The position numbers were made by a program, and so were the translations under genes. From Guillardia theta CCMP2712 (lineage: Eukaryota > Protista > Cryptophyta): 64,000 nt of DNA. The DNA lies in assembly GCF_000315625.1 (NCBI RefSeq), contig NW_005434650.1, positions 571,069 through 635,068 on the forward strand. Direction: 5' to 3'. Positions 832 through 29,371 of the stretch are shown here, in pieces (the stretch's first letter is position 1; the number at the start of each line of letters is the position of its first letter). The notes beneath the pieces were generated by a model that worked only from the letters and a program-made list of their open reading frames with translations, did not search any database and was not told the origin of the DNA.

Positions 832-1059
832 TGCTGGGATCCTCAGGCTTGAGCCTGTTCCGAGGGGGGTGTTTAGAACGACAAGTTTGAAGACAGGTTT
901 CAAAAATTGTTGAATTTTTACTAGAAATTTGCGCTAAGTGGGGGACATTTTTCAGTAAATAAACAAATGTTCGAGTGCTTTGACGAAATTTATATACCCC
1001 TCGTTGAAATTCCGAGATGGGGGGGAGGCCGTCCCTGTTGTAGGCACGCAACCGCAGTT

Positions 1060-1830: not shown

Positions 1831-1849
1831 ATTCCGAATCCCGCCGAGA

Positions 1850-2250: not shown

Positions 2251-2256
2251 CTGAAC

Positions 2257-2299
2257 AATGTTCTTGTGAAGGAACATGGGAATGTTCCTTTGAAGGAAC
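2257..2299. promoter_or_regulatory. Tandem pair of palindromic sites (period 24 nt)
   Basis: aatgttcttgtgaaggaaca and aatgttcctttgaaggaac; each is an inverted repeat (atgttc..gaacat; gttcctt..aaggaac). Confidence 0.4.
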
Positions 2300-2539
2300 C
2301 GTCGGGCACAACCCTTCGCCTTGACTAGCATGCCTGACATGGCGGAAAGCGCTGCAGGGAGGGGAGGGGAACATGCAGGGGGAGGCTGCCTGAGGGATGA
2401 AGAGAGGCAGAGAGGCAGATGTGAGGAGGAGAGTGCTCGGGGACTGCATGAGAGAAAGAGGTCACGAGGTCGAGGTCGGGACTGCGCTGCTCTGGCATCC
2501 GTGAGGAAGGTTGGTTTTCAAATTGGGGCGGGAGGGATC

Positions 2540-5500
2540 ATGGCAAGGATCTTCGTAGTCTTTAGTTGCTTCGTGCTGTCTCGGGGTGAGAATGTGACAA
2601 CGATTCTCAATCCTACTGGGCACTTGAACGAGGCATTCAACGTGAGCTTTTCAGGGTCCGGGTTCGACAGCGCAGGAGTGTATTCATGTACTATCAACCG
2701 CGGGAGCATGTTGGAGGTTGGCTCTGCACTCAGAGTCGATCCCGATCTGATCGTCTGCTACTTCTCTCCATCTTCAAGACTGCCCGGAGTGTGGAATGCA
2801 ACATTGCTGAGAGATGGCCTGTCGGTGCAAGTGGTGGGCAATAACGTTCTCACAGTCTTCCTACCGCCGAAGTTGTATGCATCCTCTAACAATTATTCTT
2901 TTCCTGCTCCCGATTGCAAAGGCTCCTGCTGGCCAATCTACATCCCTCTTCAGGGTGAGGGGATTCTGCTGAGCGAGCGAGGCAAGTTCAGTTGTGGTAT
3001 CGTGAGCTCGAAGGATGGCAGTCAGATCCTGCTTCAGACGAGGATGGATACCATGCTTTCTTCCGCATTGTCGTCCATCGTTCAAATCAGCCAAGATGGG
3101 AGTCTTACGTGCGCCATAGGCACTGCAGATTCCTTTCCTCAATATTCCCAAGGGACTTTCAAGCTGGTAGTCATGTACCAAGGGAGGCCAGTGGAATGGA
3201 ACGGGGATGGGTTGACGTTTCACTTGGGGGAGGCTTGGACACACACAAGCTGTGATGGCTCTTCTTGCGCACTGAGTGCGATGGGAGAGACCGAATTCCA
3301 AGTCTATGGGTTTGGTTTCAGCAATTCCTCGTACGACTGCCAGTTCAGTGGGAACGGTGTAGATGTCACTGGAAAGGTTTCGTACGTAAGTCAAGTGCAG
3401 TTAGCCTGCACAGCTCCTGCAAGGAGTCAGACAGCATCTAAAGTCTCGTTCTCGCTCCACAACTCTATGAGCAATCAAGTTCTTTTCTCAGGCCCTGCCG
3501 TTCCTACCTTCCGTTACTTTGCCGCCTGGTGGTTCCCTATAACGCCCGTGTTTTCAGTGTTGGGTGTTCCAGATGCAGGTTGGACAACGCCGCAGGTCTA
3601 TCAGAATGACAAGGTTGTGATCAATGGAGTCGGCTTCAACCTGTCAAGAAGCTATGTCGCTCATTTCATTGGGAGGGATGTGAACGGAGACAGATTGGAA
3701 ACGGTCCAGGCTGATCTGCAAGTCGTTTCTGAAACGCGCATGCTGTTGCAAGTTCCTCAGTATGGTGGACCAGAGGCATTGGTTCTTGTTAGCCTTTACG
3801 AGTGTAGCTCTGAACAGAACTGCCAACTGCTGTCCTCTCGTTACGATGGCAATCGCTTCCGCTTCGTTGCAAGTGTCTTCCATATGACAGTTTTGAACAG
3901 CAGCCTGTGTTACCCGCAGGGATCGTACCGTTGCTGGGGGCACATTTCTAATCCAATCAGCATCACTGTTGCGGGTCAAGGGTTCAATCCTTCCTATTCA
4001 TATCCAGTGTACAGATGTCGATTTTCTTCTCACGACAATCAATCATTCTATGTCCTTTCCGACAGCGTCGTCGCTGTTGATCAGCACACTATTGTATGTA
4101 GCATGCCAGCATGGCCTTTCTTATTCGTTCCAAAAGTGGAGCTGACGATATACTCGATGATCTCAGAGGTCACCCTGTCTGCTGGCCTCTCCAACGTCAA
4201 GCCTCTCTACTTTTTCCTTCCTGTAGTCACCCGGATGGCTCCTACCGCTGCTCCTGCCTCAGCTGCCCTGCTGACGCTCAGCGGGTTTGGGTTTGCTGGG
4301 AACACCTCTTGTTTCTTGCATGTACAGGAAGACTCCCCTTGGCCCCACGTCTTCGGCTTTCGCAGGCTCATGCTGCCTGCCAAGAGGTTGTCTCCTTCAA
4401 CTTTGAATTGTGACCTCGGGGACCTTTGGGGGATCCGATTCCCTTCCTCGGTAGCAGATGTATACGTCATTCAGTATCTTGGTCTGGGAGTAGCAACGCC
4501 CACACACTATGGATCCATGGAGGCCTCCCTGTCGGTCAACTTCAGCTCACCCGACGACATCTGGCCGATCGAGAGTGGAATGATGCTGATCGTTGGGCAG
4601 GAGGTGATGATGATCAAGAGCGCCTCCGACGGAGGGAGTCAGTTGGTGGTCAACCGCGCGTGCGTCACTTGCGCCATAGGTGTCGAAGACGTCTACCTGG
4701 TCCTGCCGAGAAATTCCAGCTTCGTGTTCAAGTTTTACTTGTCCCCTTGGTACTCCATCAGCAACACAGACTTGTACTCTGCCGGGGGAAGTTTGGTTCT
4801 TCAGGGCTATGGCCTGTACAATACCAAGATCCCAGAAGCAAGAAGTCTAGCCTCCTCAGTGACCAGCGGACTTTTGGCAGATTTCACTCCAGGGAACTAC
4901 GCAGCAGGAGGACTTGTTTATGGGGTACTGTTCGACCTGTTCCCGGAGGAATACGTCTCTGTGACCGGAGTCGACGTCTCCATGAAGGCTGGAGCGGGTC
5001 ATGTCTGGGTTTACACGAGAAAATGTGAGTGCAGCCTGTGGTTCAGCGAGTTGAACCTCGACGACTGGCAGCTCGTTGCCAACGTGAGCGTGGAGGGAGG
5101 TGGCCTTGTAAATGTGAAGATCAACGATGTAAATATCTCGGCCAACGGCAGGAGAGGTCTCATGATCCTCTCTGACCTCTCCTTCGCGTATGCCAGGTGT
5201 GACAGCGCTTACGGAGGCTGCGGCACCAACTCGTCAACTGACAACATCTTGACGATCGAAGCCGGTCTCTCCGTCTCGTCCTGGGTCAACGTGATGGGTG
5301 AACCAACACTGCTCAAGGAGCAGTGGGGCAACAGGGCCAGCCCTCGTTTCTTCGTCGGCAACGTCAACTATTCCGTGTTACTTGGGGATACCTACGTCTG
5401 TGAGCTTCAGAACGAGGCTGAAACTGCCTTGTCCGACTGCTCCAAGGCCATCTCCACCGCGAGGATCGACGAGCCTTCGCTGGTGACTTGCAACTTCCAG

Positions 5501-8500
5501 CACCTTGACACTGCGGGCATCTTCAACCTCCGTCTGTTGAAAATCACCAGCGGAGGGAAGGAGTACCTCGATGCCCCGACGTACAACGTGACCGTGCACG
5601 CGTCCTGGATCACGTTGGAAGGAAACCTGACGCTCCCCAGGTGGGGTGGGAGTGACCTGGTGGTGTATGGCTTCGGCTTCTCGATGGCCGGCATGCGATG
5701 CCGCTTCTCCGCTCAGGGCGTCTTCATCGACACCAACGTCACCGCCCTGCAGATCCATGACGTCTGCCGTTTCCAGTACTCGAGCTCCGTGGCCATTGCA
5801 GGCTGCCAGGAAGGAACATGCATAGTGCCCAAGTGGCCCACCTCAGATCTGAGCTCCCCCTTGACAACTGTGGAGATCAGCGTTGTCGACGCGGCTAGCC
5901 GAGTGATAGACTGGACGCCCCTGGCCTCGACCTTCCCTTACACGTTGTATGGGATGACGGCAGCGGGCAACTCGACTAGCGGGTGTGGGTACAACACAAC
6001 CTACTACCTCGTCTCCGACTCGCCCGAGTACACTGGGCGATCTGCAACCCTGTACGAGGTCTGGTCCTACGTGACCCCGTCGGTAGTCCCGGCGACGGGG
6101 GAGGAAGACGTTGTCATCTCGGGCTACGGGTTCAACAGCAGCGGCGAGTACGTGTGTGCAGTCAGTATGCTGGGCCATAGCGCCTTGTACTCGTCGCAGG
6201 TCGTGAATGACTCGGCGCTCCGTTGTAACCTCAAGGAGTTTGTGTGGGGGAGTCACTTTCCTGCTTTCCACTCAGAGCAGGCGCTGTGGGGCAACGAGGG
6301 AGAGGTCTCCGTGCTCAAGTCGGTAACGGCAGTCAACGGCTCCGACTTGAACGACCATGTAGGGATGTATGAGGAGATCCTGAGGCGGGGCCTCAGCCTG
6401 TACTTGATGGGTTGTGGCAGTATCAGATCGCTGCTGGTGCAGGAGCAGAACGGAATCAAGTCAGCGGTCTTGGGAGACTTTCTATGGGGGGACGGGGGCG
6501 GTTGGCAAGCATGTGACTCGCTGACTGTCATTTCGGAGGTGAAGAACGAAGAGCCGAGGTGCGAGAGGTTGGCAGGGAGCCTGTTCTGTGACAAGTCAAG
6601 GTCGACTTCCCTGTCGTTCACCTCGAGCTGGGGCTCGCAGAGCAGGCAGTACTCGGTGACGAAGGAGAATATAGCGGTGGAAGTGAAAGGGAGCGGGTTG
6701 GACGTGTCGAGCTGTTACTTCCTCAACTTTACATCTGAGCTCGGCTGGCAGCTCTCTTCCTTTGAGAAGCCGCGGAATTCAACTTTCATCGGGTTTGTGT
6801 TTCCCGGATGGAAACTGAACAGCGTCAGGACAAGTCTGGAGCTTCATCGAATTATCTCCGACCAGCCCATCCCATCGTGCGAACACTACTCTTCAATCTT
6901 CAACTCCTCCGTCACCAACAACACCAACACGTCCAATACTTCGAATGTGAGCGATGTATTCCTTGACACCATGGCTTCGTTCAACTCTTCAAATATCTCA
7001 GCAACGAACAACTCAAACACAACATCAGACCCTTCCCTTTCTTTCTCTACTGAGCTTGCCGCCTTCAACACTACAGAACTAGTATGCCGCAGCGGATATT
7101 TTCCGGACTGCGAGGGTGGAGAGCAGGTCAACTATGACTTTCTTGCCGAATGGTACTTTGGAGGCAACGACGCGAACTCGGTCCAGCTTCAAGGGTACGG
7201 CATCGGAGAAAACTACAACTACACCTGTGTCTTCCAGAACAACATCGGCGAATTCCAATCAGCACTGAACATAACCTCGCTAACTTGTCCGATTCCATCA
7301 GGCTACTTCTCGCCTTCGTACCTCAACATCTCAGTCATCTCGTCGCTTCCTCTGCTCAGAAACGGGATCAGCGATACTGTACAGACTTTCTACTTCGGTC
7401 TTCTCCAGGGCCTCAGTGCCAACCCAAAGCTGTCTGGTCCAGCATCGGGAGGGTCCGTGGTGAGCGTGAAAGGATTCAGGTTTTCTGCTTCTGCCACGTA
7501 CACTTGCCTGTTCTCAAGGGAGCTGGAAGAGAGAGAAGAGCAAGCGGAGTATGTCAACGACGAGCTTCTCCTCTGTCCCACTCCAAACTGGGGCAAGGAT
7601 TACCCAGCCATGGGGGGCAGAGTCCAGGTTGACATCGCCTACGAGGGTTGGAAGTTTGCCAAGGCCGACGTCGACTTCTCGTTCGAGTTCTACATGATAT
7701 GGAACTCTTCCTACGTGTCACTCCTACAAGCGTCAGTCAAGGGCGGGAGCAGCCTCGACCTCCGCGGCTTCGGCTTCGTTCAGTCGGTCGAGTACTTCTG
7801 TCTCTACGAAGCCTTTCAGACCACCGTGGCTGTTCGAGCAGACTACACGACGGTGACGAGCTTGACTTGTCCATCGCCAGTGGTCGATTATCCTGCGACC
7901 ACCGTCACTGTGAGCCTGTCCTACTCTTACAACGGAACAAACCTGTCAATTCCCCAGCTGGATTCTACCACCCTCTCTCTTTCCCTCTACGAAGTGGTTG
8001 ACAGCGTCTCTCCCAGCTCGGGCTGGGCTAAAGGCGGCCAGAAAGTCGTTGTGTTCGGCCAAGGGTTCGTCCCTGAAGCAAACTACTACTGCAAGTTCGA
8101 GCATGGGGAAAGCATGTCGGTGAAGGCGAAAGTGGTGAGCACCACTGAGCTCTCATGCAACGTGACAGCATGGGATGTGCACGAGACTGTCGGCCTGGAG
8201 ATTCTCAGGGAAAGTGCGAGCGTCGTCCACTCGACTCAGCTCTCCTTCACCTTCCTGCAAGGATGGGACTGGATCGAACCGACCCTTGCCTCAGCTCGAG
8301 GGACAGCCAACGTCACCATCTACGGCTTCGGCTTTGACGTATCTCCCTACCTCTGCAGATTCTCGTCCGGGAGCTCCAACTTGACGACTGAGGCCGCCGC
8401 GATCTCCCCTGGCCTCATCGTCTGCCCCGTTCCAGCATGGGGCGCTGACTTTCCGGTCGCTCCCAACGAGACTGTATCGCTCGAGCTGCTGCAAGGGATG

Positions 8501-11500
8501 GAGGTTGTGCCCTTCACCAACTCAGGGTTGGAGCAGGTGAGCTCGGCTCCGTGTCAAGACACTTCCTGTCAGCTCCTCCTCTGCTTCGAGTGGGTCTCTT
8601 ACAACATCGACAATCAGGACAACGGGATGTTTGCTGGGGGCTCCAGCAGTGACGGCAAACTTGTTACAGTCCATGGGTTCGGCTTCTCCCCGGATTTCAC
8701 CTACACGTGCGAGTTCACCATCGGAAGCTGCAAATATCAACAAGTTGGGACTATTCAGAGCTTCCAGGAGCTCAGCTGCCCCGTCCCAGCTCTTGCTGCC
8801 TCCTGCCCTGCTTCGTCAGGGACTCTGCAGCTTCTCCTGGAACCCCTCCCGTCTCTCTGTCCCGCCCTGTCTGTTCTGAGCCTCACCTACCGGCCTTCAT
8901 GGTCGTCGATGGGCTCGCTGCGACTGCCAGCGAGCGGGTCGGAGACGGTGATGGTGTATGGCAACGGGTTTGTAGAGGGCTCGATATATCAGTGTCAGTA
9001 CGTGTGTGCAGGAGTCAGTTTTACCATGAAAGGGTACTGGAGGGACACAACCATCCTTGAATGTCACTCGCCCACCTGGAATTTCGCCGCTACCACGTGC
9101 AAGGTGTCGATATTGCAGGACAGCCACATCGTTCGCTTCCTTCCCCACCCGGTGAACTCGTCTGACGTCGTCTTCTTGTATCCTTGTACTGACGGAGTCG
9201 TGGCGCCATCCTCGTTCTCCTCCATCGGGGGATCTATCCTCACTGTGTTCGGGTTTGGCTTCAACACAGACGTCTCCAAGGACTACATCTGCATCTTCTC
9301 CGGCCCTTCACTGCAGAACTACACGCAAGCCAGAGCGGTTGATGCCAACACCATCATCTGCCGAGCGCCGGACCAGTGGGGATTGACGAGGCCGTCAGGA
9401 CAAGTCGCGGTGGAGGTGACGGAGAACGAGGTTCCATTGCCCTGCATCAACTCGTCACGGTGCTGGTCCAACACGACCGTGAGGTTCGAGAGCCTTCCTC
9501 TCATTCGAAATCTCTCCATCTCAACCTTCTCAGCCTCGGGCGGGGACACTCTGACCATCTCGGGGTATGGCTTCGGGTACTGGCCAGTAGAGTTGGAAAT
9601 GCCGGGCAAGCTCTGCATCTTCAGAAGCAGCCTGTCGCCAGGTGCAGTGTCAGTGCAGTCGTCGATCTCGGTGGTGAGCCCAGCTCGCATGGAGTGTCGA
9701 ATTCCAGAGTGGAACTACAGCACAATTTCCACCGGGGTCCTGCAGGTCAGACTGCAAGGGGCATACGTCCCGTTCCTGCCCAACGGCCAAGTTACCTCGC
9801 CCTTCGTCTTCGAAGCCGTGTGGGGCCACAAGAATGTCTCCCAGAGTCTGGCCAAGGGTGGACATGTCGTGAGCATACAGGGAGTCGGGTTTCGGCTCGA
9901 GGCGACTTACTCTTGCGTCTTTGACTATCAGGGCAATGCCACGTCATCAACGGCGCAGTTTCTTGACACCCAGAACCTCCTCTGCCTCATTCCGAGCTGG
10001 GTCTATCCTCAGGCGACTGCGCGTTTTTCTGTGCATGACGTGTCGGGGAGCAGGGAGCTGGACAGGCTGCCGGGTACCGACGACTCGTTCACCTTCTATC
10101 AATCCTGGGACTCAGTCTCTTCCTCGAACCCCGTCGATGGGCTGGCGAGCGGGAACGAAGAGCTCCTGCTCGAGGGGTTCGGCTTCGTTCCTTCGGGCAT
10201 GTACCGCTGTGTCTTCCAGCGGTACGTGGACGGAGAGGTCAACCAGACCATGACGGTTGAGGGACATTCAGTGAGCCCCACTACAGTCTCTTGTCAAACT
10301 CCCGCCTGGGGCCTGCAGTACGTGGCGTTCCAGGTCGAGGCCGAGTCGGAGCTGAGAAAGGAAGGGCACACGGCCGTGCTCTTGACGATGGATGACGTTG
10401 CAGTCAACTTCACCAATCGCACGCTGGACGCTGTGGAGGTCGACACCTTCTCATGGTACGAGCTGTGCACTTCGGTGGAGCAGAGGGTGGATCAGCCGCA
10501 GAGAGGGTCATGCATCTTCCGCTTCCTGGTTGCCTGGTCCTCCCAGGGCACATTCCCTTCCACGTTTTCTGCTGCAGGAGGGGAGCTGATACACGTGAAC
10601 GCGTTCGGCCTCTCGGCCTCGCTGGAATACCTGTGCGTCTTCTACTATCACACGGGTGACAGCCTGCAGTACAAGACTTTCTCCAACGACATCACACGAG
10701 CATGGCAGGGGTATCGGTTCCTGCGGAGGTTCTTCAGCCCGATCAACAAGACATCATTCGAATGCACCTCTCCTGCATGGAACTACCAGCACGTCAAGAA
10801 CGCGACGCTGGAAGTGAGGATACAGGATGAAGTCACCGACGTGTTCAGCTGCCAAGTGGTCAGCAAGGCTCCAGGTCCTCCCAGGTATATTGAGTTTCTC
10901 CCTGGGATCCTGCAAGTCAGCCCGACGAGCCTGCCAGCGCTGGGCGGGTTCTTGATAACCATCTCGGGCTTCGGCTTCGGTAACGAGAAGCACGTGTGCG
11001 ACTATGGGGGGCTGCAGCAGACGGAAGCAGTTGTATCCACTTGTTGTGAAATCCCTCAGCAACCCTGCATGTACTATCAGGTGCTGTGTGTAGTGGAGGA
11101 TTGGTACTTCGACCCTGGGCTCTTCAACCTGTCCGTGATCCCTGCCTCGCTGTCCTCCCCGATACAGTTCTACGACAGGAACGGAGAAGATTTCGTAGCC
11201 AAGGAACAGTTCGCGCAGACTGTAGATTTCTACACTGTCTGGAACAAGACTAATCCAACTTTCTTCGACCGCCTGGGAGGAATCGATGGAGGGAGGTCGC
11301 CAGCGCTGACGATCACTGGGAGAGCTTTCTACGAGCAGAACAAGTACTTCTGTGTGGTTGGGAGCACCCTCAACGAGAGCGCAATGCAGCAGGCTCAGAG
11401 TGAGCCGGCAGGCAGTATCGCCGATCTCCTGACTTCCTACTCCAACTTGGTTGTGGAGGCTGTTCACTTGGAGTACAGCCCAGCATACAGGGTGAGCAGA

Positions 11501-17500: not shown

Positions 17501-20500
17501 GACCTGCCATACCCCTTCGGAGATCAGGACCAGAACGTCTCGTTCCACATGATCGTCAAGGACGTGTCAGTTCCCGCAAGGTACCACATCTCCTACGGAA
17601 CTGTCGACACCTTGCTGCTGGACAACAGCTGGCACATCAGGCCGAATGGGGCCCTGGAGTTTCAGCTGCACCAGTATGTCAACGGCAAGGCAGAGTTCGA
17701 GGTCTACATGGAGGATGACGGAAGCCTCGCTTGCGGGGGGGCGAGGCAGGCTCAGCAGAACTTCACCTTCCTGCTGGAGGTCCTGCCGGTGAACCAGAAC
17801 CCGAGGTTTGAGTTCTCTCCCTCCTCCGTGCAGCAGGGCGGCGAGATCCCCGTGCTGTGGCTTCTCGAGTCGAGCCAAGACATTGTGAGGGAGGAGGGGA
17901 GGAACCTGCTGGTCAACGTCACATCTGGCGAATGGGACGAGGGCGACCAGGGCCTGATCTTCCAGGTAGACCTTGTGGTCGCGCCTGATGATGAGATAGG
18001 AGCTGATGATGTTTCTTCTCAGGTCGAGTTCGTGTCCGGCGATCCGGATCTGCTCTTGGGCCCGCAAGTCGTGCTGAACTTGAGAGGTTTCGGCTGCAGC
18101 TTTGCTTCTGCTAGGCTTTGCTACTCCTCTGCGGATTTTCTTTTCAGGACGGACAGGTGATTGAATCCTCCTCCGACCTTCTCTGCCTCTTCTCATTGTC
18201 TTCAACCCTCTTCCATCCCCAACTCCTTGATCTCCATCTCTTCCAATCGCTGATCATCTTTGCATTTCAGCCATCGTTTCGGATCGAGCCTCTACAACTT
18301 CGTTCTGAGAGACACGGGGTCTTATGCGGGGCCGAACCGAGGAGAGACGAGGAAGCTGCTGATGGTGAACGTTGTGCCTGTCAACGACGAGCCTCGCTTC
18401 ACCATGACTGAACATCTCCTGAACATCCGGATGGGTGAAAACTGCAACCTACAAGCTTCCCAGGCGATGATGTACAACCTAACGATCAGTTCCATCAGCA
18501 ACAACAGCGAAGTCTTCAACTTGACTACTCTAGCTGACCTGTTAGTCTTTCCGACGGCCTCGTCATCGCAGCAGGACTTGTACCGAACTATCTCGGACAC
18601 TCTGAGCACGTTTACAGGGAAGAAGATGTCCGTGAGCCTCAGGGCTCCCTGCGTCTCGGGTCCGTCAGACTTATCTGCCCTGATGAACATCACTTGCTTC
18701 CTGTACGTTGAAGGCTGTCGGGATGCCGCTGACCACCTGGCCGTACGGAGCCAGCTGCAGACATCGATTGCTGGACTTATAAGTCTGAGGGACTCAAACT
18801 CGACCCTACCTGTCTCGGTCTCCGACGGGACATTCGCGTGCCTTTTGGACCGCAACATCTTCGTGGTCCCGAACTTCATCACCAAGTTCACCGTTGGCCC
18901 GTTCGAGGGCTACAACCACGACAAGAGCACAAGGAGAAGCTACGAAAACCAGACGGGCTCCTTCGAGTTTGCTAACGTCAACGGTGCCCAACAAGAAACT
19001 CCCGTCATCCCTCGCGTCCTCCTGCCCTGCGGGTCCCTCGTCTTAGAGGTGACCAACTCTTCCATGAGCAGCACAAACTTCTCCATCACCCTCGTGGACT
19101 CTCATGCTGACGACGGAACCACCCAGCGCTCCCAGACTGAGCACTTCGTCGTCCAGATCCTCCCCTACGTCAAGCTTCCCAGCTTCGACCTGCGTGTGCA
19201 GGAGTTGACGATGTTTGAAGGGTCTGGAGAATTCTTCAACAATTCTGTGGCATACAACATACTCTCTGGATCAGGTAACTGGGAGAACACGACCTTCAAC
19301 ATTGTAGTGCAGTATCCAAGCATGTTTGCTGTGCTACCAACGATGACGCTGGATGGATCCTTGAATTTCACTCTCTCGCCATATCAACATGGGACAACAA
19401 CGCTGAGCATAACCTTGCTGAGTGTCTTCCATGACTACAAGACCTCGGTGATCACCTCGGCGGTCAAGGTGATAGTGTTGAAAGTGCTGCCGGTAAATCA
19501 GAAGCCCACTTTCATAGTGCGGGACGTGTTCATTGTGAAGAACTGTCCGGTGCAGGCAGATGAAGCATGTCAGAACAGGTTCCACATCGTAGAGAACTTG
19601 GTGTCGCAGCTAGTGGTGGACATGCCGAACAAAGTTTGCAACTCTCAGGGCGTCTTCTGCGACAACCAGAATGTCACCTTCTTCATTGATGACGTCACTA
19701 ACCCCTCGTTGTTCAATCTTCAGCCAGTGGTTCATGCCAACGGTTCGCTGGTCTTCAGCGTCAATCCTGACCTGACCGGCGAGTCTTTGGTGATGCTGCA
19801 CGCGACGGACGACGGGCCCATGAACAGCGACCCGATGTTTGCAGGAGACAACACGTCCACTCGACACTCCTTCAAGATCCTCATCGATACCATCGACTAC
19901 CCGCCGACCTTCGCCCTTCAGCGGAACGTCTCATGTGGAAACCTGAACGCGACGAGGAACGAGACTTGTACCTGCCCGACCCTCGAGAATTCAACCATGA
20001 GCTATCAGGTCTGCTCGGTACCCATGAACATCCTTCGTAACGATTCAGTCAACGTCGAGATTCTCCAGGGAGCTGGTCTCCTGCGGATTGACAACTTCGC
20101 CTCCTACGTCTCTCCTGCCGAAGGGTTCTTTGCGAGACATAGATCGATCTTCGGGTTCCCAAAGCCTCCGGCCAGTCTCGTGACGTCAGCCGTGAACTTC
20201 ACGGTCCAGAGGAGCGACCCTGTGGCAGCGATCGGAGGGCTGGGCAAGTATTACACAGACTATGTCGTCTCACCTGACAAGAAACACATTTATGCCGTCC
20301 AGAGGGACACAAACTCTGTCTCCATCGCGCAGATTCAGAATCAAAACATCTCGCAGACAGCGTTCCTGGACAGAAGGTCCGACGGCGAGGACAGGTTGAG
20401 ATTCCGAGGCTTCACCCAGTACGCTAAGAACGACAGTGACATCATCACATACAACCTGACCGACCTCTGCCACTTGTCGTCGGTAGTTGTCGATCACAGG

Positions 20501-23500
20501 CCCTACATCATGAACTCGGCAGGATGTCAGTACATTCCAGAACCTGCGCCTGTTCCCTCGGACTGCCCCATCGACAAGCTGACTGTCCTTTGCGACATCA
20601 ACTGCTGCAACGAACTTCTGCTGCAGACTGTCGGAAACTGGGTCTTCGAGTCTGCTAGCCTCTATGGTGAGCAGTCCGTCCAGAAATCCCTGTCGAGCCT
20701 CGGCAATCTGACGTGCAACTCCAGCATGTGTGTGTACTCCAGGAACAGACTGCAATCAAACTGCGATGAGAGATATGACACAGTCTACGGACCCGCCACC
20801 TTCCGCGACTCGTCGGGGGTGTTGGGAGCGGCTCTGGTGCTCGGGGCAGGCCTGAGTTGCAAGTCTGACGTGTATGCTGACTGGGACCGGACGCCACAAG
20901 CGAGCATGTCGCCACTCAACTTCATCTCCAACAACGGCGTGAAGGAGTCGATTCAACTGAACATGTTGAACCCAAGGTTGGTAGTGTCCGGGGACACGAC
21001 CACTGTAGCAAGTGTGCTGCAGAAGCAACTGGCCGTCTCAATTTGGTTCACGATCGAGAAAGACACGGTCGAGTCGGGGCTGGTGAGCGCGGGATACTTT
21101 GCTACATGCGTGAAGGGCTGGACGATCTCATATTCAAGAAGCTCTACCAGTACCTCCTTCTACTTCAACTTCACCGCCAGCAGCAGCATCCAGAGGAAGA
21201 TCTTAAACACTTACCGCAGGACCCCGACGCTGGAACTCGGCAGCTGGGCTCACCTGGTGGTGTCCTACAACGGGACGGGAGTTGACTTCTACCTCAACGG
21301 AAACCTCGTCCAGTCAAGGATCGCCTGCCCAGCTGACTGTGGGGTCCTCAAGTACACTTCCGACGCACCTCAGTGCAAGTTTGACAACCCGTTCTTGCTG
21401 GGGGACCTGGGAGTTACCAGCAACCCTCAGCAGCACACGGGGATGGTAAGAAGTGTCAGGATCTTCAAACGAGCCCTGGTTGCCAGCGAGGTTGACTTCC
21501 TCTACAAGCTGGAGAACTTGACAACAACTGTGCTGCTTGACAACTACTGGGTCCACGGAACCGGAAGGGTAGTCAACAAGACCATCCTTGGGGCGATATC
21601 GCCTAGTGGGGACTTTGCAAACACGAATGAGTCGACGAGCATCATGTTGCACGGGAGGTTCAGCAAGGGCTTCGGGTACCGCTGTGAGTTCATCACTGCA
21701 GGGCAGACGGGCGTGTCCAACATCTCCTACCCCATCTGTGATGACCCTCTCTACTGCAGCTACCTCATCTGCCTGGACATATTCTGGCCTTCGGGGATGA
21801 GAGCGACTACGATGCGACTGATCCGACGGAACATGACGAGGGGAACAGAGGCGACGGTCTTGCAGCGCTTCTGCTTCGATGAGAGCTGCGGTTACATCCC
21901 TCCTGACCAGCGGAATGTCAGCGACTGGTGGATGATAGTAACGGAGGACGGGTCCACGAAGCTCGACACAGGCTGCACGGGAGTTCTCACAACCTTCCGC
22001 TTCATCATCCGGTCGGAGATCCAGAGGCTCGACGTGACGTCCAAGGCCGTCAGCCGGGTCAAATCTCTATCGCCGCTGATAGTGACTCAGGACTTCAAGT
22101 TTGACACCTACGCCGTCAACGTTTCTAGCCGCGCCATCATCGAAACAAACCTCACGTCAAGGAACTTCACCATCAACGTCGGCCTGTGGAACCGGACGGT
22201 CTGCCCGTCGGGCACACTGACTGTCATCAACACGTCCGTCTCCATCCTGCCGTACTTCCATGACTTCTGCAACAGCACCAACAGCACGTGCAAGGGAGGG
22301 ATCTGTACTTACTTCAACAACCTTACCGTCCTCGGTGTCTCCTCCATCACCCCCTTCGAGTTCTCCGGTCAGACCTACCTGATGGTGGCCAACTACTGGG
22401 ACGGGAAGAGCACCTCAGTCTTCTCCCCGCTCCTGCACATTACTGTCAGCGGCACCTCGGGGGATGTTGGACTAGTCCATGTGCAGTCAGTATTCACCAG
22501 CGGGGCCAGGAAGTGGTTGTACGTGGATGTGAACTCTCGATCCGACGACAGCAGGCCGCTGCTGATCCTGACGTCCTTCGTTGACAACTCAGCTGGCTAC
22601 CTCTTGAACTCCTCGAGCGGACTTCCCTTGCAAGCTTCTGACCCTATCCCGTTCCCAGTGTGGTCCTCCGCGTCTTCCTGCTCCTTTGAGATCTTCAACG
22701 TCTCCTACGTGGCTTTTGCCTCCTTCACGAGCAACCAGGACTCTACCATCTTCGCCCTCGGCGTCCCGAAGAACTCGACATTCAGCTACTTCGGCGACCG
22801 GCTGGTCCCTCACGATCGGGAGTTTGCCAACAGGCGGGTGACTGCGAAGAAGGTCCTGTCTTTCACAACCACCAACGCCTTTGACGTGGTACATCTCACC
22901 GCCGACAACCGCAACTTCGTCATGTTCGCCAGCTTCATGCTCAACGGGGCCTCGCAGATCTTCGAGCTCAAGGGCTCCGGAATGATCTCGTCCGCTGACC
23001 TCCTGCAGTCTCTGAATGTTCCCTATGCCACGTCCTTGCGCGCCTTCACCTACAGCGTCACCTACATCATGGTGGGAAGCGCATCGAGATTGACAGAAAT
23101 GTATCGGTGGAACGGGACTCAGTTCAACGGCGCTCTGTCCGCCAACACACCTGCCTCTGGATCGTCAGGAGGACAACAGATCCCGTTTGCGAATGTTTCC
23201 TCGATTGACCTCGTGCAGTGGCCGAGCTCGGACGGGCTTCATACCTGCAACAACCAGGTCGCCTTGTTGTTTGTCGGGCTTCGATCGTTCGACCCGAATG
23301 TCTCGGCCAGCGTGAAGATACTGAGGGGATGGAGGGAGTGTGTGTCAGAAATGCGCAGGCCAGTCGCTATCGACATCCTCCCTACTGGCAACTTCGTCTA
23401 CATCGCATCTGCAGAGTCTCGCTCGATCTCCGTCTTCTGGCGTGACCCTGCCGTCGGACATCTGATCTACAGCAGCAGCGCCTCGTTCACCTCAGGATAC

Positions 23501-26500
23501 TCAGCTCTGATGCAGCAGATCTCCACCAACGTGATCACCAAGGACAAGCTGCTGAGCAAAACCGACTTCGGATTCCCTTTCCGCTCCATCCGGTCGATCC
23601 AGGTGAGCGCGGATGCTCAGAATCTCTACGTGACGAGCTTCAACGACAATGCGATCACCGTGTTCAACGTCGACCAGACGACTGGCGGACTGACTCGCGT
23701 GCAGACGCTGAGTGAGGGGCAGAGCATTGCTGGGACTGTGACGAAGGGAATCAAAGGGGCGACGGGGCTGCACATTGCCAACCTGGTGTATGTGACAGGA
23801 TGGTTGGACGATGCTGTGAGTGTGTTCAACAGGAACTCGAACGGAGAGCTGGGGTTCTGCGATGCGACATACAACGGAGAAGTGAACTTCCTGTCTTTCA
23901 ACGTGTCTTCACCCAACACTCTGATCCCGATCAAAGCGCTGACCACGACCCAGTCATTCCAGGAGGGGAGCTTCTACCCGAAGAGGATCGGAAGTTTCAG
24001 CAACAACTGGGCTCTGACTGCCCGAGCTACGAGGCACTTTCAGATCGACCAGGTCGACTACCTCGCTGTTGCCTCTAGCGATGGTGAGACGGGCGTCGGA
24101 ACCGTCACGGTCCACCGTTGGAGCTCTTCCTCCACCAAGTTTGTCCTGCTCCAGACTCTCTCCGGCAACCAGGCGGCCCATTCAGTCACCTACTTCAACA
24201 TCAGCGACCGTGCCGGGCATGTCCTGCACTACCTCGCCGTCTCCAACTCCATGACTTCAACTTGCAACCGTCAGTCAAACGGGGTCAACATCTTCTCTTG
24301 GAACCAGGGCCAGCAGCTGTTCGAACTTTTCCAAAACCTTCAGAACACTGATCCAGCCCGCGAATCCCTAACGGGGGCCGTGCACGCTGAATTCTTCACC
24401 TTGAAGGGAGACGTGCACTACCTGGCTGTGGCGTACTATGACGATTGCTATAGAAACTCCACAGTTGAGTCCGTCATCTACCGCTGGAACCCCTATGGGT
24501 GGATGCGGCAGACCAGCGAGACGGCGATGACCTGGACCCCTGGCTTCGAGCCCTTCCAGAGGGTCCAGACGTTTGGAGCCGTTTGGATCGAATTCCAAGA
24601 TCCAGTCCTGGTGATCTCCAACTTCTATGACGGGCATTCTTGCTCGTTTGACAACGTCGACGTGTACGTATTCAACAAGGATCTGTACAACGACATGCTG
24701 CGAAGTCCAGCTGGATCGTTCGAGATACGGCAGAAGATAGCTGGACATGGGACCACGGGGACCAAGATCTTCAACCTGGAGGGGGTCGGCATGCTGATGG
24801 CTGTCGCAAACAGGCAAGCCGATCTCTACAGGATGGACGACATGAGTGTGTTCGATGTGGATCCTGTGATCTACATATGGAATGACACTTGTGTGAACCA
24901 ATGGACTGAGAATCGCCCGTCGGGATGCTTTCTCTTGTATCAGACCCTGCAGTTCCAGTCTTCCATGGGCAACGTCACCATCCCCGACAGCCTCTACACA
25001 ACAGCAGCCTCCTCCGGCTCTTCCATCTTCAACGAGTTCCGTGCCAACATGACGGCAAGGTACTGCATGGAAAATGCCTGCACGACGTCGGACGACGGGG
25101 CGACGAAGGTAGTCAACCATGTCCGGGGAGCAACGAGAGTTCACTTCTTCGAGGAGGGAGGCAACGTGTTCCTGGCTGTTGCCCAGTCAGTCTGCAACTT
25201 CAGTTCCTCCAGAGCTGCCTGCATCGGGGAGATGGGGATGAACGGGGCTGTTCCGCAGTCCAAGTCTTCCATCTTCCAGTGGGAGGCGAGGACGAGAAAG
25301 TTTGTGGAGATGCTCGCGATCAACCAGGAGGATGCCAAGTACCCACGGCATCATCAGTACGCTATGAGAGTTGACGTGGGTCAGGCTCTCAACATCGAAG
25401 ACTTCGTCATCGGCGGTCAACACTTCCTGGTCTTCTCCAGCCATACCCACGGAGCGCTACTCTTTCTATGGCGCTTCGAGCTGGTCAACGGGATGACTGG
25501 GCCCGTCGGTGTCACCACGGCCGATACCGACGCAATGTCAACCATCTTCGTGCTGAACGAGCTAGAGCACTCGCTCGTCACTTTCGACATCGCCAGCGTC
25601 TACGACGGTCTTGGCCACCGACAGAGTCTGTGCGACAACGTGGGCTTCAAGTTCCGGGGAACGCAGGTCGAGCAGCTGCTGACCAAGAGCGGGCAGGCGG
25701 TGGATCCGAGCAAGAAGTCAGCGATGGGGCTGAATGGAGCAAGGAAGATCATTTCCTCCTGCCTGGGGTCAAACTCTTCTAGAAACATCTTCTGGTTGTT
25801 CCAGACTGCCGACTCAGCATTCAACAACATGTGCAAGGTCACAGTCCTGGCCGGGCCGAGACGGGACGAGGAGGTCTGTTCTTCTATAGGGACGGCGATC
25901 AGCAAGGCCGGGGAGGCTGTTCCCTGCCAGTCAGTGAGCTTCCTCGTAACGCAGTTGTCCGCTGACCCCCCCCAATTTGTCCTGCCCAACCTCACGCTGC
26001 ATATCAACGGGACCCTCTCGCTCCTCGCTCCCAGCATCAGCGGCTCCGCGAGCTTCAAGGTGGAGCTCTTGGACGACGGGCTGTCAACCAGCTACGAGGG
26101 GAGGCGGTTAGGAGACGATCGATCCTCGCCGAGGTACTTTAACCTGGTCGCCATCCCCACCACCTCCGTCCCCTTCTTCGTCCCCTTCGACGTCTTCTGC
26201 AACCAGGGCACAGGAACACAGTCCCTCGTGTTCGCTTCTGACCTCTCCTTCGGTGCTGCCGGCAGTTTCATCTCGGACATGTACTGGGAGTTCACCTGGT
26301 CCAGGGCAACCTTTCTACAGACCCAGCCACTGCTCTCGGTCGAGCTGGTTGAGGGCATTCCCATGGGTATCGTCAGAGTCACCCCTACCGCCGACGGCTT
26401 CGGGAGCACAGTCTTCACCGTTCGCCTCGTGAACAGGTACTCCCTGACGCTGAAACGCGGCAGCTTCGCCTCTGTCTACAAGAACTTCACGCTGACCGTC

Positions 26501-29371
26501 CGGCCTGTCAACCAGCCGCCGACCTTCAGGCCGAGAGTCCCTTCGCTCACCGTCATGGCCGGAAACGGAAGCTACTTCGAGAAGGGTTTCGCTACGCAGC
26601 TCACGGCAGGGAATGCAGCAGAAGACAAGACACAACTTGTATCGTTCAGCATCGCTGGCATACACTTAGGAAGTCAGTACTACACGCAGGACCAGCTCTT
26701 CAGCAGCTTCCTTCTCAACTCTACCGTCCTCGCGTTCACCGTCCTCCCCAACACAACGGGAACTTTCAACCTGACATTGATGATCAAGGACAACGGCGGA
26801 ACGACGGACGGAGGAGTCGACTACTCGCTCGTTGGCATGCAGCTCGTCGTCATTCCTTCTAACAAGCTCCCCAAGTTCGCTCCTCGGGCTCTGAAGGTCC
26901 CAGAGGCGAAGCTGGTCGTCCCCCAGGTCTTCACTGCCTTCTTGGTCCGAGAGATCTCCGACCTCAAGTTCAAGGCGAGGAACCTGAGCTTCTGGACCGA
27001 GAGCTCCAACAAGAACCTCTTCCTCCAGGGACCCAACATCTCCTACCCTGACGGCACCCTAAGCTTCACTCTCAACCCCTTCCACAACGGCGTTGCCAAC
27101 CTGACCATCTGGCTCTATGACTCGTCCCAGCAGCTCAACAGGAGCACCAACAAGGACTTCTTCACAGCACAGCTCACCGTCATCCCTGTCAACGACCCTC
27201 CTACCTTCAACGTCACCCCCGAGTATCGTTGCGTAGAGAACAGCGGGCCGCAGATAGTCCGGGGATTCGTCTTCGACGCTCTCCCCGGCCCTCCGGACGA
27301 GAGCTGGCAGAGCATTTTTTACAATATCAGGATCGAGAACCTCTCCCCCAACCTCTTCTCCTCCTCCCCGTACCTCGACGCCAGCGGCACCCTCTACTTC
27401 ACGAGCGCTCAGGACGCCCATGGCACAGCGACGCTCCTCATCTCCGCGTTCGATGACGGGGGGTCAGACTTCGGAGGCCTCTCCACCAACGCCTCCCTCA
27501 GCTTCGTCGCTGTCGTCCGCGTCCTCCCGCTGCCGAGGCTGCTGGGAATCACTCCAGCAGTCCTCCCGTCCAGCACAAGCATGCAGGTCACAGTTCTTGG
27601 GTTGTACTTCGGGTCCACGTACAGCAGGGGATACGCAGCGGGCGAGTATCGAAATGCGCAAGTCTTCTTCGGCAACCGATCATGCGCCAACGTGTCCATC
27701 CTGTCTGACAGCAAGATCCTGTGCGAGACGCCGCTGCTCCAGGGAGCCCAACAGCTCTCGCTGCGAGTCAACGAGCTGGGGCTGGACCGGCGAGTTTCTC
27801 TTCCCAAAAACGTCTTCTTCAACTCCTTCTACGTGGGAGGCCTCGGGGTCGGGGCGACGGGCGAGGGTTTCATGGGATACGGCTACTCGGCACTGAGCTC
27901 CGGAGGGGTTCAGTTCCACCCTGATGAGATGGCAATCGACGGTTCCATCCTGGCCCTGTACACAGAAGCACACGTCATCGTCTTCGGCGGCTCCTTCCGG
28001 TCTGTGAACTCCGTGATGGTCAACCACATCTTCATGTGGAACGGGGTCACAGTCAGGCCCTTGGGCTTCGGAGTGGACGGGGAGGTGAAGGCGATCGCCA
28101 AGTACGGCAAGAGCCTGTTGGTAGGAGGATCCTTCACCAAGGGCTACTCCACACGAGGAGCAGCGACTCACAGCGGCGGCCTGATCAGGTGGGACGGTGC
28201 GCGATGGCAGCAGGTGGAGGGAGTTCTGCAGGGGGAGATCCGGACCATTGTCACCAACGAGAGCAGCATCTTCGTCGGAGGGGAGTTCAACCAGTTCTGC
28301 TCGAGGCCCTTCAACGGCATCGCCATGTTCGACGGGACGCAGTGGCGGTCGCTCGGGGACGGGGTGTCAGGGGGGAGCGTCTCGGGTCTTGCCGTCTACG
28401 GCAGCGTCCTCGTGGTCGCTGGCAGCTTCACAAGCGCCAGCAGCCTCCCCATCGCAAAGCTCGCGCTCTGGAACGGAACTACATGGAGAGGCCTTGGGCG
28501 GGTGAGCTATTTCTCCATCCCAACTCCATCCTTGCTCCATCCCTGCTCTACCATCCTTCCCCTTCCCCCTCCTTCCTCTCCCTCTCCCTCCCCTTCCTCC
28601 CTCCNNNNNNNNNNNNNNNNNNNNNNNNNNNNNNNNNNNNNNNNNNNNNNNNNNNNNNNNNNNNNNNNNNNNNNNNNNNNNNNNNNNNNNNNNNNNNNNN
28701 NNNNACACAACACCCCCCTATCCGTAAAAAAAAACAAAAAAACTCTCCATCTCCCTCTCCCTCTCCCTCTCCCTCTCCCTCTCCCTCTCCCTCTCCCCTC
28801 TCCCTCTCCCTCTCCCTCTCCCTCTCCCTCTCCCTCTCCCTCTCCCTCTCCCTCTCCCTCTCCCTCTCCCTCGTTCCCCATCATCTTCCACTACCCTGAC
28901 GAGCTGCTGCAGGTGGAAGGAGACGTGTTCGCTCTCGTGACGTGGGGCTCCGACTTGTTCGCAGGCGGGGCGATGAAGGCAATCGACGGGTTGAGCGTCA
29001 ACGGCTTTGCCCGCCTCTCCCTCCTCCAGGACTACTCCCAGTACGCCAACCCCTGGGCTGCTGTCGGGCTTGGCATCAACGGCTACGTGACAAGCATGGT
29101 CACAGCTGACGACTGCGTGTACGCTGTTGGCGCTATCGACAGGGTCTTCTCCTCCCCAGGGCAAGGAGCAGCAGCGAGCAACGGCTTCAGAGTCTGCAGA
29201 GCTAGTGGGTGGGAGGAGTACGAGGCGTTTGTGGAGGACGAGAATCGGACAAGCTCGATCTTGTACGTGATCGCGCCTGCGGGAAGAACAGTCCATCCCT
29301 CCTCCCTCCTTCCTCTCCTCAACTATACCAACTCGACTTGGACCAACTCCACCAACTCTAGTGTCATATAA
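2540..29371 (+). CDS. Giant secreted multidomain protein (~8768 aa): signal peptide, IPT/TIG array, cadherin-like Ig array, lactonase-type propeller with LamG and EAR/EPTP inserts, cadherin-like repeats, IPT, Rax2-like propeller
   Basis: Exons 2540-18156, 18271-28501 and 28913-29371 (26307 nt). Starts MARIFVVFSCFVLSRG. GxGF..YxCxF..CxxPxW repeats span ~2620-11690. VNxxPxF...GTLxF...LxDxGG repeats span 11695-20130 and 25850-27530. LamG motif WAHLVVSYNG..FYLNG. C-terminal GxVxA..GGxF..WDG repeats. Confidence 0.9.
18157..18270 (+). other. Intron 1 of the giant gene (114 nt, GT-AG)
   Basis: ag|gtgatt...gctgat...tttcag|c. Splicing gives FLFRTD-S-HRFGSSLYNFVLRDTG and completes a cadherin-like repeat. 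Both ORFs are in the same frame. Confidence 0.9.
28502..28912 (+). other. Intron 2 of the giant gene, with a (CCCTCT)n tract and a 100-N gap (28605-28704)
   Basis: cgg|gtgagc...ctgac...ctgcag|gtg. Splicing gives WRGLGR-VEGDVFALVTWGSDLFAGG, restoring the propeller blade. Confidence 0.9.

Follow-up and report, generated by a model that had tools for sequence, protein, structure and literature searches.

ADGRV1 (VLGR1) is an animal protein of ankle links and periciliary fibres, and the entire architecture of TSPEAR consists of LamG plus EAR; the pairing of LamG with an EPTP/EAR propeller is otherwise known from animal proteins related to hearing and epilepsy. Among bacteria, the RTX adhesins SiiE, LapA and FrhA are examples of giant repeat proteins, and bacterial giant adhesins are anchored N-terminally, with their binding heads distal. 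Here we describe a locus that recalls systems of both kinds, in a 64,000-nucleotide window of the genome of the cryptophyte alga Guillardia theta. We conclude, with a probability of about 0.75, that it is one gene encoding a single protein of the secretory pathway, probably an adhesin or fibre of the cell surface or matrix.

Two long open reading frames, 2321-18160 (ORF1; 5,279 codons) and 18260-29371 (ORF2; 3,703 codons), share frame 2. The gene model that we propose for them is as follows:

2330..2539, + strand: possible 70-codon N-terminal extension (MPDMAE...) or conserved 5′ leader, opened by an in-frame ATG 11 codons past a stop
2540..2587, + strand: start codon of the original prediction and signal-peptide-like segment MARIFVVFSCFVLSRG, from a hydropathy scan and comparison with the Hanusia protein P0001
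2540..18156, + strand: exon 1, 15,617 nt; residues 1-5205 and two bases of codon 5206
18157..18270, + strand: intron 1, 114 nt, GT..AG, phase 2; holds the TGA stop of ORF1
18271..28501, + strand: exon 2, 10,231 nt; residues 5206-8616
28502..28912, + strand: intron 2, GT..AG, at least 411 nt; includes an assembly gap (28605-28704) and CT-rich microsatellites
28913..29371, + strand: exon 3, 152 codons and the TAA at 29369-29371

With both introns removed, the coding sequence has 26,307 nt and no internal stops, and it specifies 8,768 aa ending in ...NYTNSTWTNSTNSSVI (8,838 residues if the start is at 2330). The product would be about 960 kDa before glycosylation, with a pI of about 4.9, close to the size of about 8,770 aa and 1 MDa given in the original prediction.

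The case for a single gene turns on intron 1. Its boundaries are ACAG/GTGATTGA...TTTGCATTTCAG/CCATCG, it is 75% pyrimidine, and the TGA that terminates ORF1 (18158-18160) belongs to it. The original prediction, that the two frames are joined by a canonical 114-nt intron whose removal completes a repeat, is borne out by the common frame, the GT..AG boundaries and a repeat unit (residues 5112-5254) that straddles the junction. In our alignment A4 this unit is spaced like the rest of its family, as L-x-F-(7)-G-(5)-hydrophobic-x-L-x-D-x-G. Four distant homologues (P0002-P0005) span junction 1 (FRTDS/HRFGSS) without gaps, and in P0003 (6,944 aa) and P0004 segments matching both ORFs are collinear within a single protein.

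If ORF1, with its TIG and cadherin-like repeats, were instead a gene ending at the TGA at 18158, and ORF2 were transcribed and translated independently, the stop would cut short a repeat unit that needs the splice for its completion. The first in-frame Met of ORF2 falls in mid-repeat, and ORF2 has no signal peptide of its own, yet it encodes domains of extracellular type. Homologues that carry both halves in one chain also speak against two genes, as do the intron-like length and boundaries of the 114 nt, since the introns of the neighbouring gene are likewise short and GT-AG. Two genes would fit the sister-species contigs, which halt on either side of the junction, and the lack of an RNA junction read: P0001 runs to about residue 5151, some 54 residues short of the junction, and its last 7 residues differ from the window, while P0006 begins at residue 5378. 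However, these breaks are contig ends rather than demonstrated transcript ends, and we regard the two-gene arrangement as extremely unlikely. Judged by sequence comparison at junction 1, the ORFs are almost certainly a single three-exon gene with two GT-AG introns.

The transcript-derived proteins of the sister lineage are otherwise collinear with the gene model. P0001 follows residues 1-5144 with indels of at most 3 aa, and P0006 follows the model from residue 5378 onward, with a single indel (3 aa) and a conserved C-terminus, so that residues 5145-5377, junction 1 included, are left unbridged. Short proteins that might bridge residues 5207-5379 were looked for and none was found, and a metagenome-contig scan for Hanusia nucleotides, based on the alignment of exon 1 with Hanusia, gave 216 pattern sites, none of them related. 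Because ortholog indels do not exceed 3 aa over 8,533 aligned residues, no exon is concealed in the assembly gap and there is no further intron.

Intron 2 is bounded by GGGCGG/GTGAGC...CTGCTGCAG/GTGGAAGG, and the gap of N letters lies entirely within it. At junction 2 (GLGR/VEGDVF) the product aligns without gaps to the ortholog P0006 and to the homologues P0003 and P0004; the coding frame and its continuity are therefore independent of the true length of the gap. The Hanusia-like transcript contig L003 (76% identical) is also gapless here, reads GLGRVEGDVF in its product and has the same C-terminus. It represents spliced RNA, because it is without the three short GT-AG introns of the gene that neighbours ours in the window. 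The original prediction had a second intron take out a PSPS/X tract, and this agrees with what we see: the tract is the in-frame reading of (CTCCCT)n repeats in intron 2, and the segment is absent from P0006 and L003. A straight read-through of 28502-28912 was considered and rejected, as it would consist of CT microsatellite and N and is missing from the orthologs.

RNA junction reads from G. theta itself, the direct confirmation of the introns, were not obtained. An RNA run from 2026 (764 million letters), mapped on 15400-21300, gave 1 read in 5.9 kb and none covering intron 1, which indicates that the gene is nearly silent in that sample; a second, putative RNA run gave zero reads on the same region. 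Four runs from 2011 contain the locus, and their assembled contigs retain the intron, so these runs are DNA and provide no junction evidence.

The domain content of the product was determined by scanning Pfam on overlapping protein tiles, by custom profiles and by structural models. The following features were recognized:

2633..11662, + strand: IPT/TIG (Ig-like) array of at least 21 domains, residues 32-3041; in tandem from residue 1540 onward, with one domain every ~97 aa
11789..19927, + strand: first cadherin-like/tandem-95 array, at least 16 units of about 100-130 aa, residues 3084-5758; split by intron 1
19931..25834, + strand: non-repetitive cassette in the centre (residues 5760-7727), kept as one block across the family
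21011..21493, + strand: LamG/concanavalin-A-like jelly-roll, residues 6120-6280 (Pfam) or about 5980-6295 (model)
22328..23485, + strand: seven-bladed beta-propeller 1, residues ~6559-6944; weak EPTP matches (20.8 and 22.9 bits), last blade lactonase-type
23588..23872, + strand: two 6-phosphogluconolactonase-type blades, residues ~6979-7073; Pfam Lactonase at 37.5 bits, and PDB 6NAU at E 3e-13
23885..25474, + strand: propeller 2, of EPTP/EAR type, residues ~7078-7607; seven blades, with insertions in the loops
25832..27538, + strand: second cadherin-like/tandem-95 array, 5 units, residues 7727-8295, from a profile search and alignment A4
27554..27775, + strand: C-terminal IPT/TIG domain, residues 8301-8374; Pfam TIG, 28.8 bits
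27851..29224, + strand: C-terminal Rax2/DUF5122-like beta-propeller, residues ~8400-8720, blades of about 55-60 aa; split by intron 2

The TIG array is the clearest of these in Pfam, with 142.4 bits for TIG (PF01833) against a cut-off of 20.9 over residues 1-2500 and matches in 8 of the 10 N-terminal tiles. TIG_2 and Anth_Ig also match in the array, and custom profile searches counted 17 and 20 units. Over the whole protein, Ig-like and cadherin-like modules together number about 45.

About one-third of the protein consists of bacterial-type tandem-95/cadherin-like repeats, which the original prediction had overlooked. The units terminate in V-x-P-V-N-[DQ]-x-P-x-F. Single-sequence profiles of the unit found only their own seed, and the search worked once homologues had been added. 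The family matches themselves stay below their cut-offs: NCBIfam tandem-95 (NF012211) has an E-value of 3.3e-8 and 33.4 bits against 90, and Big_9 has 15 bits against 23.6. BLAST relates the protein at E 1e-40 to P0007 and P0002, both of which pass the cut-offs for Big_9, Cadherin_4 and Cadherin_5 (PF17963, PF17803, PF17892). Against PDB sequences the unit profile retrieved an RTX protein and cadherins at insignificant E-values of 0.2-0.9.

Within the central cassette, lactonase-type blades come first; a Cys-rich stretch, LamG, a domain of Ig-like type and the propellers follow in that order. LamG is recognized as Laminin_G_3 (PF13385; 56.4 bits, cut-off 27.6) and by a profile match to the LamG of pappalysin (E 2e-12), and its modelled fold reaches Z 16-19 to lectin-like and carbohydrate-binding jelly-rolls. 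Propeller 1 has 28 strands in the AF2 model, with pLDDT mostly 80-93, and PDB profile matches as well. The Lactonase match (PF10282; 37.9 bits, cut-off 21.7) covers only profile positions 249-330 of 344, and further blades of this type lie upstream of LamG; the two groups may belong to one propeller nested around LamG and propeller 1. Many other proteins contain the unit of about 95 aa, in 5-26 copies in tandem; an enzymatic role is not implied.

Propeller 2 is assigned to the EPTP/EAR type on several grounds. EPTP (PF03736) scores 66.2 bits against 21 over residues 5207-7706, with tile scores of 43.7 and 47.3 bits (overlapping tiles that have one best stretch in common) and 36.3 in the next tile, and there is a profile match to LGI1 at E 3e-11. 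Identity to LGI1 is only 17%. The AF2 model of the propeller (model residues 549-1078) superimposes on the LGI1 EPTP domain (5Y2Z_B) with Z 35.8, 316 of 328 residues aligning at an rmsd of 2.0 A; unrelated propellers of generic WD40 type follow at Z of about 29-30, some 6 units lower. Foldseek with the whole 1,200-residue model returned only generic multi-propeller proteins, e.g., DDB1, at TM ~0.15. The C-terminal propeller matches Rax2 at 28.7 bits, just below the cut-off of 28.8, and P0003 and P0004 align to it gaplessly. The extracellular repertoire of TIG, LamG and EPTP named in the original prediction thus stands, each above its Pfam threshold and EPTP also by fold.

With respect to topology, the hydropathy scan finds a single hydrophobic segment in the whole protein, the N-terminal MARIFVVFSCFVLS, and no C-terminal transmembrane or GPI-like tail, as had been predicted. 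The protein contains 183 N-x-S/T sequons, a twofold enrichment over the approximately 88 expected, and 201 Cys. The start codon is ambiguous: with translation from the ATG at 2330, the hydrophobic segment would be preceded by 70 further residues of hydrophilic character, and the protein could be either type-II anchored or equipped with a signal peptide having a long n-region. The earlier claim of secretion by a signal peptide is accordingly upheld only in part: the N-terminal hydrophobic segment is present, but Met-2540 is not conserved (it is Leu in Hanusia).

The same gene might therefore produce a type-II (N-in, C-out) surface fibre, starting at 2330 and held by an uncleaved signal-anchor, with a 70-residue Arg/Glu-rich tail that would be cytoplasmic. 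The proximity of that ATG to the preceding stop is in keeping with such a product, as are the change at Met-2540, the basic residues ahead of the hydrophobic segment (positive-inside) and the analogous layout of bacterial giant adhesins. P0001, which is transcript-derived, begins with MPDMAE too, and shares 34 of the 70 extension residues, with all indels in-frame. However, the hydrophobic core is merely about 11-14 residues long with Arg nearby, its 19-residue hydropathy of 1.64 is borderline, and in both species a Met stands directly ahead of it. A small-residue pattern at -3/-1, S-R-G (A-E-G in Hanusia), just precedes a conserved ENVTT, and such a conserved small-x-Gly site resembles those of cleaved signal peptides. 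Codon usage also sets 2330-2539 apart from the remaining gene: its score of -7.1 is lower than that of any coding window (mean 21.8, minimum 5.8), and its GC3 is 0.53 versus 0.69. On balance we find the type-II form somewhat unlikely, and prefer entry into the secretory pathway by way of the N-terminal segment without committing to its retention.

Relatives of the protein fall into two sets. The orthologs are Hanusia-like transcripts (P0001/P0006), collinear and 72-76% identical. The other relatives (P0003, P0004, P0016 etc.) have 22-33% identity and share with this protein the central LamG-propeller cassette, some 2,000 aa long, as well as flanking cadherin-like and TIG arrays. Lengths and repeat numbers vary, and no relative in either set is labelled more than ‘hypothetical protein’. 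Only Hanusia phi and Rhodomonas salina (P0009, P0054) are named sources, the rest being unnamed metagenome proteins. The G. theta genome has at least five paralogous loci, a family that had escaped the original prediction. On these matches a cryptophyte origin is supported, as is membership of a family present in cryptophytes. No studied relative is among the matches found, and literature on cryptophyte mastigoneme proteomics and on giant adhesins or TIG proteins of Guillardia held nothing on this protein, in line with the earlier statement that no characterised protein is known to have this architecture.

The gene is under strong purifying selection. Over 3,389 codons its dN/dS is about 0.11 (0.147/1.28); no segment reaches 0.2, and exon 3 compared with L003 gives about 0.17. 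These values bear on a different origin for the locus, namely that it is a recently acquired bacterial adhesin mosaic, decaying or unused, which would account for few introns and little RNA. There are indeed only 2 introns in 26.3 kb, while the neighbouring gene has three or more within some 1.5 kb, and RNA is nearly absent from the sampled run. The cadherin-like units are nearest to bacterial tandem-95/Big_9 repeats, and the lactonase-type unit is found in tandem in many unnamed proteins, one cluster of which is labelled 6-phosphogluconolactonase. A decaying import, however, would not be expected to show such constraint, or to be collinear with its counterpart in a sister species, where very long transcripts of it are expressed; the paralogues and Rhodomonas relatives, the spliceosomal introns, the eukaryotic-type signal sequence and Pfam scans without RTX or type-I secretion features likewise argue against it. 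We consider recent transfer very improbable, although individual modules may be of ancient bacterial origin. An upstream scan for bacterial promoters and terminators gave nothing above chance, which is irrelevant for a eukaryote.

For the single gene that we favour, a possible scenario is the following. The N-terminal hydrophobic segment would direct the chain into the secretory pathway, where it would become heavily N-glycosylated and disulfide-bonded. A long, stiff stalk might be built from some 21 Ig-like TIG domains and, after them, some 21 cadherin-like beta-sandwich units, and it would bear ligand-binding modules toward the C-terminal part: LamG, the EPTP- and lactonase-type propellers and the terminal Rax2-like propeller. 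The protein could then be released after signal-peptide cleavage, or its N-terminus could stay in the membrane with the binding heads outward. By analogy, the most likely role for this layout of stalk and binding modules is that of an adhesin or fibre at the cell surface or in the extracellular matrix. The more particular roles put forward in the original prediction (periplast fibril, flagellar hair, prey capture) would be candidates within this reading.

If the model is right, the product is among the largest proteins of this alga and the first to be described from a family of giant cryptophyte surface proteins that has not been studied. Two of its combinations would be of interest: an EPTP/EAR propeller beside LamG outside animals, and the fusion of tandem-95/cadherin-like repeats of bacterial type to eukaryotic TIG arrays, in a 26-kb coding sequence with hardly any introns and under purifying selection. 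By itself the locus would reveal no new mechanism; it yields a corrected gene model and candidates for periplast, flagellar-hair and secretome proteomics.

Finally, we compare the protein with the known systems. The bacterial tandem-95/Big_9/cadherin-like repeats resemble its units of about 100 aa, which end in VNDxPxF and have a D-x-G-G...G-G motif, and giant bacterial adhesins resemble it in having an extender stalk with ligand-binding modules near the far end. It differs from them in its spliceosomal introns and N-terminal ER signal, and the Pfam tiles contain no RTX nonapeptide repeats (HemolysinCabind or related) or type-I secretion features. With fibrocystin/PKHD1L1 and plexin-type proteins it shares tandem IPT/TIG domains as a long extracellular stalk; unlike fibrocystin/PKHD1L1 it has no C-terminal transmembrane segment, and G8, PbH1, Sema and PSI domains are absent from all Pfam tiles.

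Like ADGRV1, the protein has a very long extracellular chain of beta-sandwich repeats into which a jelly-roll of LamG/pentraxin type and an EAR/EPTP propeller with seven blades are set. Its own repeats are of the TIG and tandem-95/cadherin-like kinds rather than Calx-beta; Calx-beta, GAIN and 7TM had no match in the Pfam tiles, and with its hydrophobic segment only at the N-terminus the protein does not have the make-up of an ADGRV1-type GPCR. Among protein-atlas features, a TSPEAR cluster appears at 0.85 (all scores being at most 0.86), which is a lead only. Compared with both ADGRV1 and TSPEAR, there are additional lactonase-type blades and the terminal Rax2-like propeller, and the resemblance does not imply common descent of the entire architecture. 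A more specific and decidedly doubtful suggestion is that the protein forms an N-anchored fibre, with a length of the order of 0.2 micrometre, as a structural component of the cryptophyte surface or flagellar apparatus (periplast fibrils, flagellar hairs or bacteria-capturing links), with its LamG-EPTP head as a protist counterpart of the LamG-EAR of ADGRV1 and TSPEAR. If this were so, the adhesion module would be older than animals, or would have been assembled twice.

Two giant open reading frames lie in the same frame on the plus strand, at 2321-18160 (ORF1, 5,279 codons) and 18260-29371 (ORF2, 3,703 codons) in the six-frame ORF list, and we put the probability that they form a single gene at about 0.9. 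As the original prediction proposed, they are joined by a canonical 114-nt intron, and the TGA terminating ORF1 is bases 2-4 of that intron. The spliced coding sequence (2540-18156, 18271-28501 and 28913-29371) has 26,307 nt and 8,768 codons with no internal stop, matching the expected product of ~8,770 aa, and ends in ...NYTNSTWTNSTNSSVI.

Introns and neighbouring gene (slashes mark exon borders)
18157-18270, plus strand: intron 1, 114 nt, 75% pyrimidine, GT..AG; ACAG/GTGATTGA...TTTGCATTTCAG/CCATCG
28502-28912, plus strand: intron 2; GGGCGG/GTGAGC (28501/28502) and CTGCTGCAG/GTGGAAGG (28912/28913)
29535-31105, minus strand: convergent neighbour gene, starting ~160 nt past the giant gene's stop

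Junction 1 falls inside a repeat unit (residues 5112-5254) of a family with at least 21 members. Splicing completes this unit, as had been claimed: the joined sequence, FLFRTDSHRFGSSLYNFVLRDTG, keeps the spacing L-x-F-(7)-G-(5)-h-x-L-x-D-x-G of the aligned cadherin-like repeats. Four distant homologues (P0002, P0003, P0004 and P0005) align without gaps over the junction, and P0003 and P0004 are single chains that each have segments collinear with both ORFs. The first in-frame Met of ORF2 occurs only mid-repeat; the frame has no signal peptide, and its domains are all of extracellular types. The one raw-read RNA run, of 764 million letters, gave a single read over 5.9 kb and no evidence across junction 1, for which reason the support there is comparative; the four runs in which the locus occurs are DNA, as the intron is retained in their contigs. 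We regard the overall gene model as very likely correct.

Among named relatives the nearest is Hanusia phi, of the sister genus of Guillardia theta. Its transcript-derived protein P0001 (EukProt, 5,214 aa) is 72% identical to residues 1-5144, with indels of at most 3 aa. It ends ~54 residues ahead of junction 1, and its last seven residues (5208-5214, HCLKLTR) differ from the window. A second Hanusia-like ortholog, P0006, begins at residue 5378, at the end of its contig 227 residues on. These breaks may mark the borders of Hanusia introns or forks in its assembly; searches of metagenome contigs and short proteins found no fragment bridging them.

For intron 2 there is transcript evidence. P0006 (3,393 aa) is 76% identical to residues 5378-8766, shares the C-terminal end point and reads ...LALWTGTSWQGLGRVEGDVFAVVTWGG... 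without a gap at the predicted junction, over which the distant homologues P0003 and P0004 are also gapless. The contig encoding P0006 (L003, JGI sample 3300017027) is spliced RNA, because the convergent neighbouring gene that it also carries is without three short GT-AG segments (50, 70 and 42 nt) present in the window. Intron 2 contains an assembly gap (28605-28704) as well as extended (CTCCCT)n tracts, and the mechanical ORF reads through because the tracts and 100 N happen to lack stops; the "PSPS/X tract" that a second intron was said to remove is this read-through. The gap lies entirely within the intron, and its unknown length therefore cannot alter the coding frame; the only indel in the full P0006 alignment is 3 aa long and away from junction 2, so the gap hides no exon. 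A (CTCCCT)n microsatellite of ~130 nt (28741-28872) adjoins the gap and is probably its cause. Another 100-N gap (49017-49116) lies outside the gene.

No indel longer than 3 aa occurs in the two ortholog alignments, which together span 8,533 residues; this leaves no place for further introns and shows that the long exons, 15.6 and 10.2 kb, are real. The coding sequence is under genuine constraint: comparison with L003 over 3,389 codons gives dN 0.147 and dS 1.28 (near saturation), a ratio of ~0.11, and the ratio is below 0.2 in every segment, exon 3 included. The window copy of the neighbour gene, orthologous to a 382-aa partial product on L003 (60-78% aa identity), has at least three short introns in ~1.5 kb, so that two in 26.3 kb of coding sequence is unusual in this genome. 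Possible reasons are retroposition, homogenisation of the repeats, or modules of bacterial origin.

The predicted protein is an ER-targeted, glycosylation-rich and Cys-rich chain of ~45 beta-sandwich modules, with 201 Cys residues, 183 N-x-S/T sequons (~88 expected), a pI of 4.87 and a mass of 959.8 kDa, close to the ~1 MDa foreseen.

Domain architecture of the 8,768-aa model (residues)
32-3041: at least 21 IPT/TIG domains (Pfam, 142 bits)
3084-5758 and 7727-8295: at least 21 cadherin-like repeat units of 100-130 aa, ending VxPVN[DQ]xPxF
5760-7727: central cassette, non-repetitive, comprising in order
 lactonase-type blades (profile matches)
 Cys-rich stretch
 6120-6280: LamG jelly-roll (Pfam, 56 bits; pappalysin LamG, E 2e-12)
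 Ig-like domain
 ~6559-6944: seven-bladed propeller 1
 ~6979-7073: two 6-phosphogluconolactonase-type blades (window 23588-23872)
 ~7078-7607: EPTP-type propeller
8301-8374: one further TIG
~8400-8720: Rax2/DUF5122-like propeller (28.7 bits; cut-off 28.8)

The anticipated IPT/TIG, LamG and EAR/EPTP domains are thus all recovered. The EPTP propeller model superposes on the LGI1 EPTP domain (Z 35.8, rmsd 2.0 A, 316/328 residues), clearly better than on generic propellers, and the LamG fold matches lectin-like and carbohydrate-binding jelly-rolls (Z 16-19). Lactonase-type blades flank LamG and propeller 1 on both sides. The cadherin-like units match the NCBIfam "tandem-95 repeat" below cut-off (E 3e-8), and proteins carrying Big_9, Cadherin_4 and Cadherin_5 by BLAST (E 1e-40).

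With residues 6530-7729 as query, an exhaustive profile-free search returned 2,222 proteins at E <=0.001, 93 of them at E <=1e-30. Among the matches collinear with the whole cassette are two proteins from Rhodomonas salina as well as metagenome proteins without names, 1,000-6,900 aa long; many others cover the two-blade lactonase unit alone, in 5-26 tandem copies. Such arrays of the ~95-aa unit account for most of the 150 representative-library proteins listed, one cluster being named by its source 6-phosphogluconolactonase (cycloisomerase 2 family). The relative P0004 is encoded on a metagenome scaffold (L001, ENA) by two giant ORFs at 63-9833 and 9866-22672 (3,256 and 4,268 codons), whose frames differ; an N run, a scaffold gap, splits them, and the full length therefore exceeds 7,500 aa. 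Gene calls around it are short and spurious, as expected of eukaryotic DNA. The same genome assembly (G000; 87,145,349 bases, 669 contigs) holds at least five further loci with the LamG-propeller cassette, in open frames of 1,000-3,955 aa. The paralogous loci listed below carry it at 25-36% identity, their open frames running from 269 to 3,955 aa, and together they make up a multigene family encoding giant surface proteins. A literature search on the protein or its family found no paper.

Paralogous cassette loci in G000
C7:260584-263550
C18:827981-829771
C18:591627-594860
C23:487122-489326
C5:936889-939315
C61:376912-378789

The sole hydrophobic segment of the whole protein, MARIFVVFSCFVLS, sits at ATG 2540 and is followed by S-R-G/ENVTT (A-E-G/ENVTT in Hanusia); the absence of a TM or GPI tail was thus correctly called. 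The claim of a secreted product with a signal peptide is uncertain, because an in-frame ATG at 2330, 11 codons past a stop, opens a 70-codon Arg/Gly/Glu-rich extension. The Hanusia protein likewise begins MPDMAE, shares 34/70 residues, its indels all being in frame, and carries Leu at the window's Met-2540. Conversely, the extension scores -7.1 in codon usage, where equal-sized windows of the gene average 21.8 (SD 8.3, minimum 5.8), its GC3 is 0.53 against 0.69, and a Met directly ahead of the hydrophobic core is kept in both species. The protein may be released or type-II anchored.

The TIG domains of plexin and fibrocystin form stalks, bacterial giant adhesins carry extender repeats, and LamG and EPTP are ligand-binding modules in LGI1, TSPEAR and ADGRV1; pappalysin-type LamG was also compared. 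Because such modules act in this way in other proteins, we suggest that the repeats would form a stiff extended stalk, estimated, at ~4 nm per module, to be of the order of 0.2 micrometre long, displaying heads that would bind carbohydrate or protein; the lectin-like and propeller modules sit in the C-terminal third. By this analogy it is reasonable to read the protein as a cell-surface or matrix adhesin or structural fibre. Its significance would lie chiefly in cryptophyte cell biology and in the presence of a LamG-EPTP module outside animals. The protein would function like ADGRV1-type links or bacterial giant adhesins. It falls outside both classes, because the Calx-beta/GAIN/7TM of the former and the RTX/type-I features of the latter were tested and are absent. 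Its architecture is new, within the known giant modular extracellular proteins.
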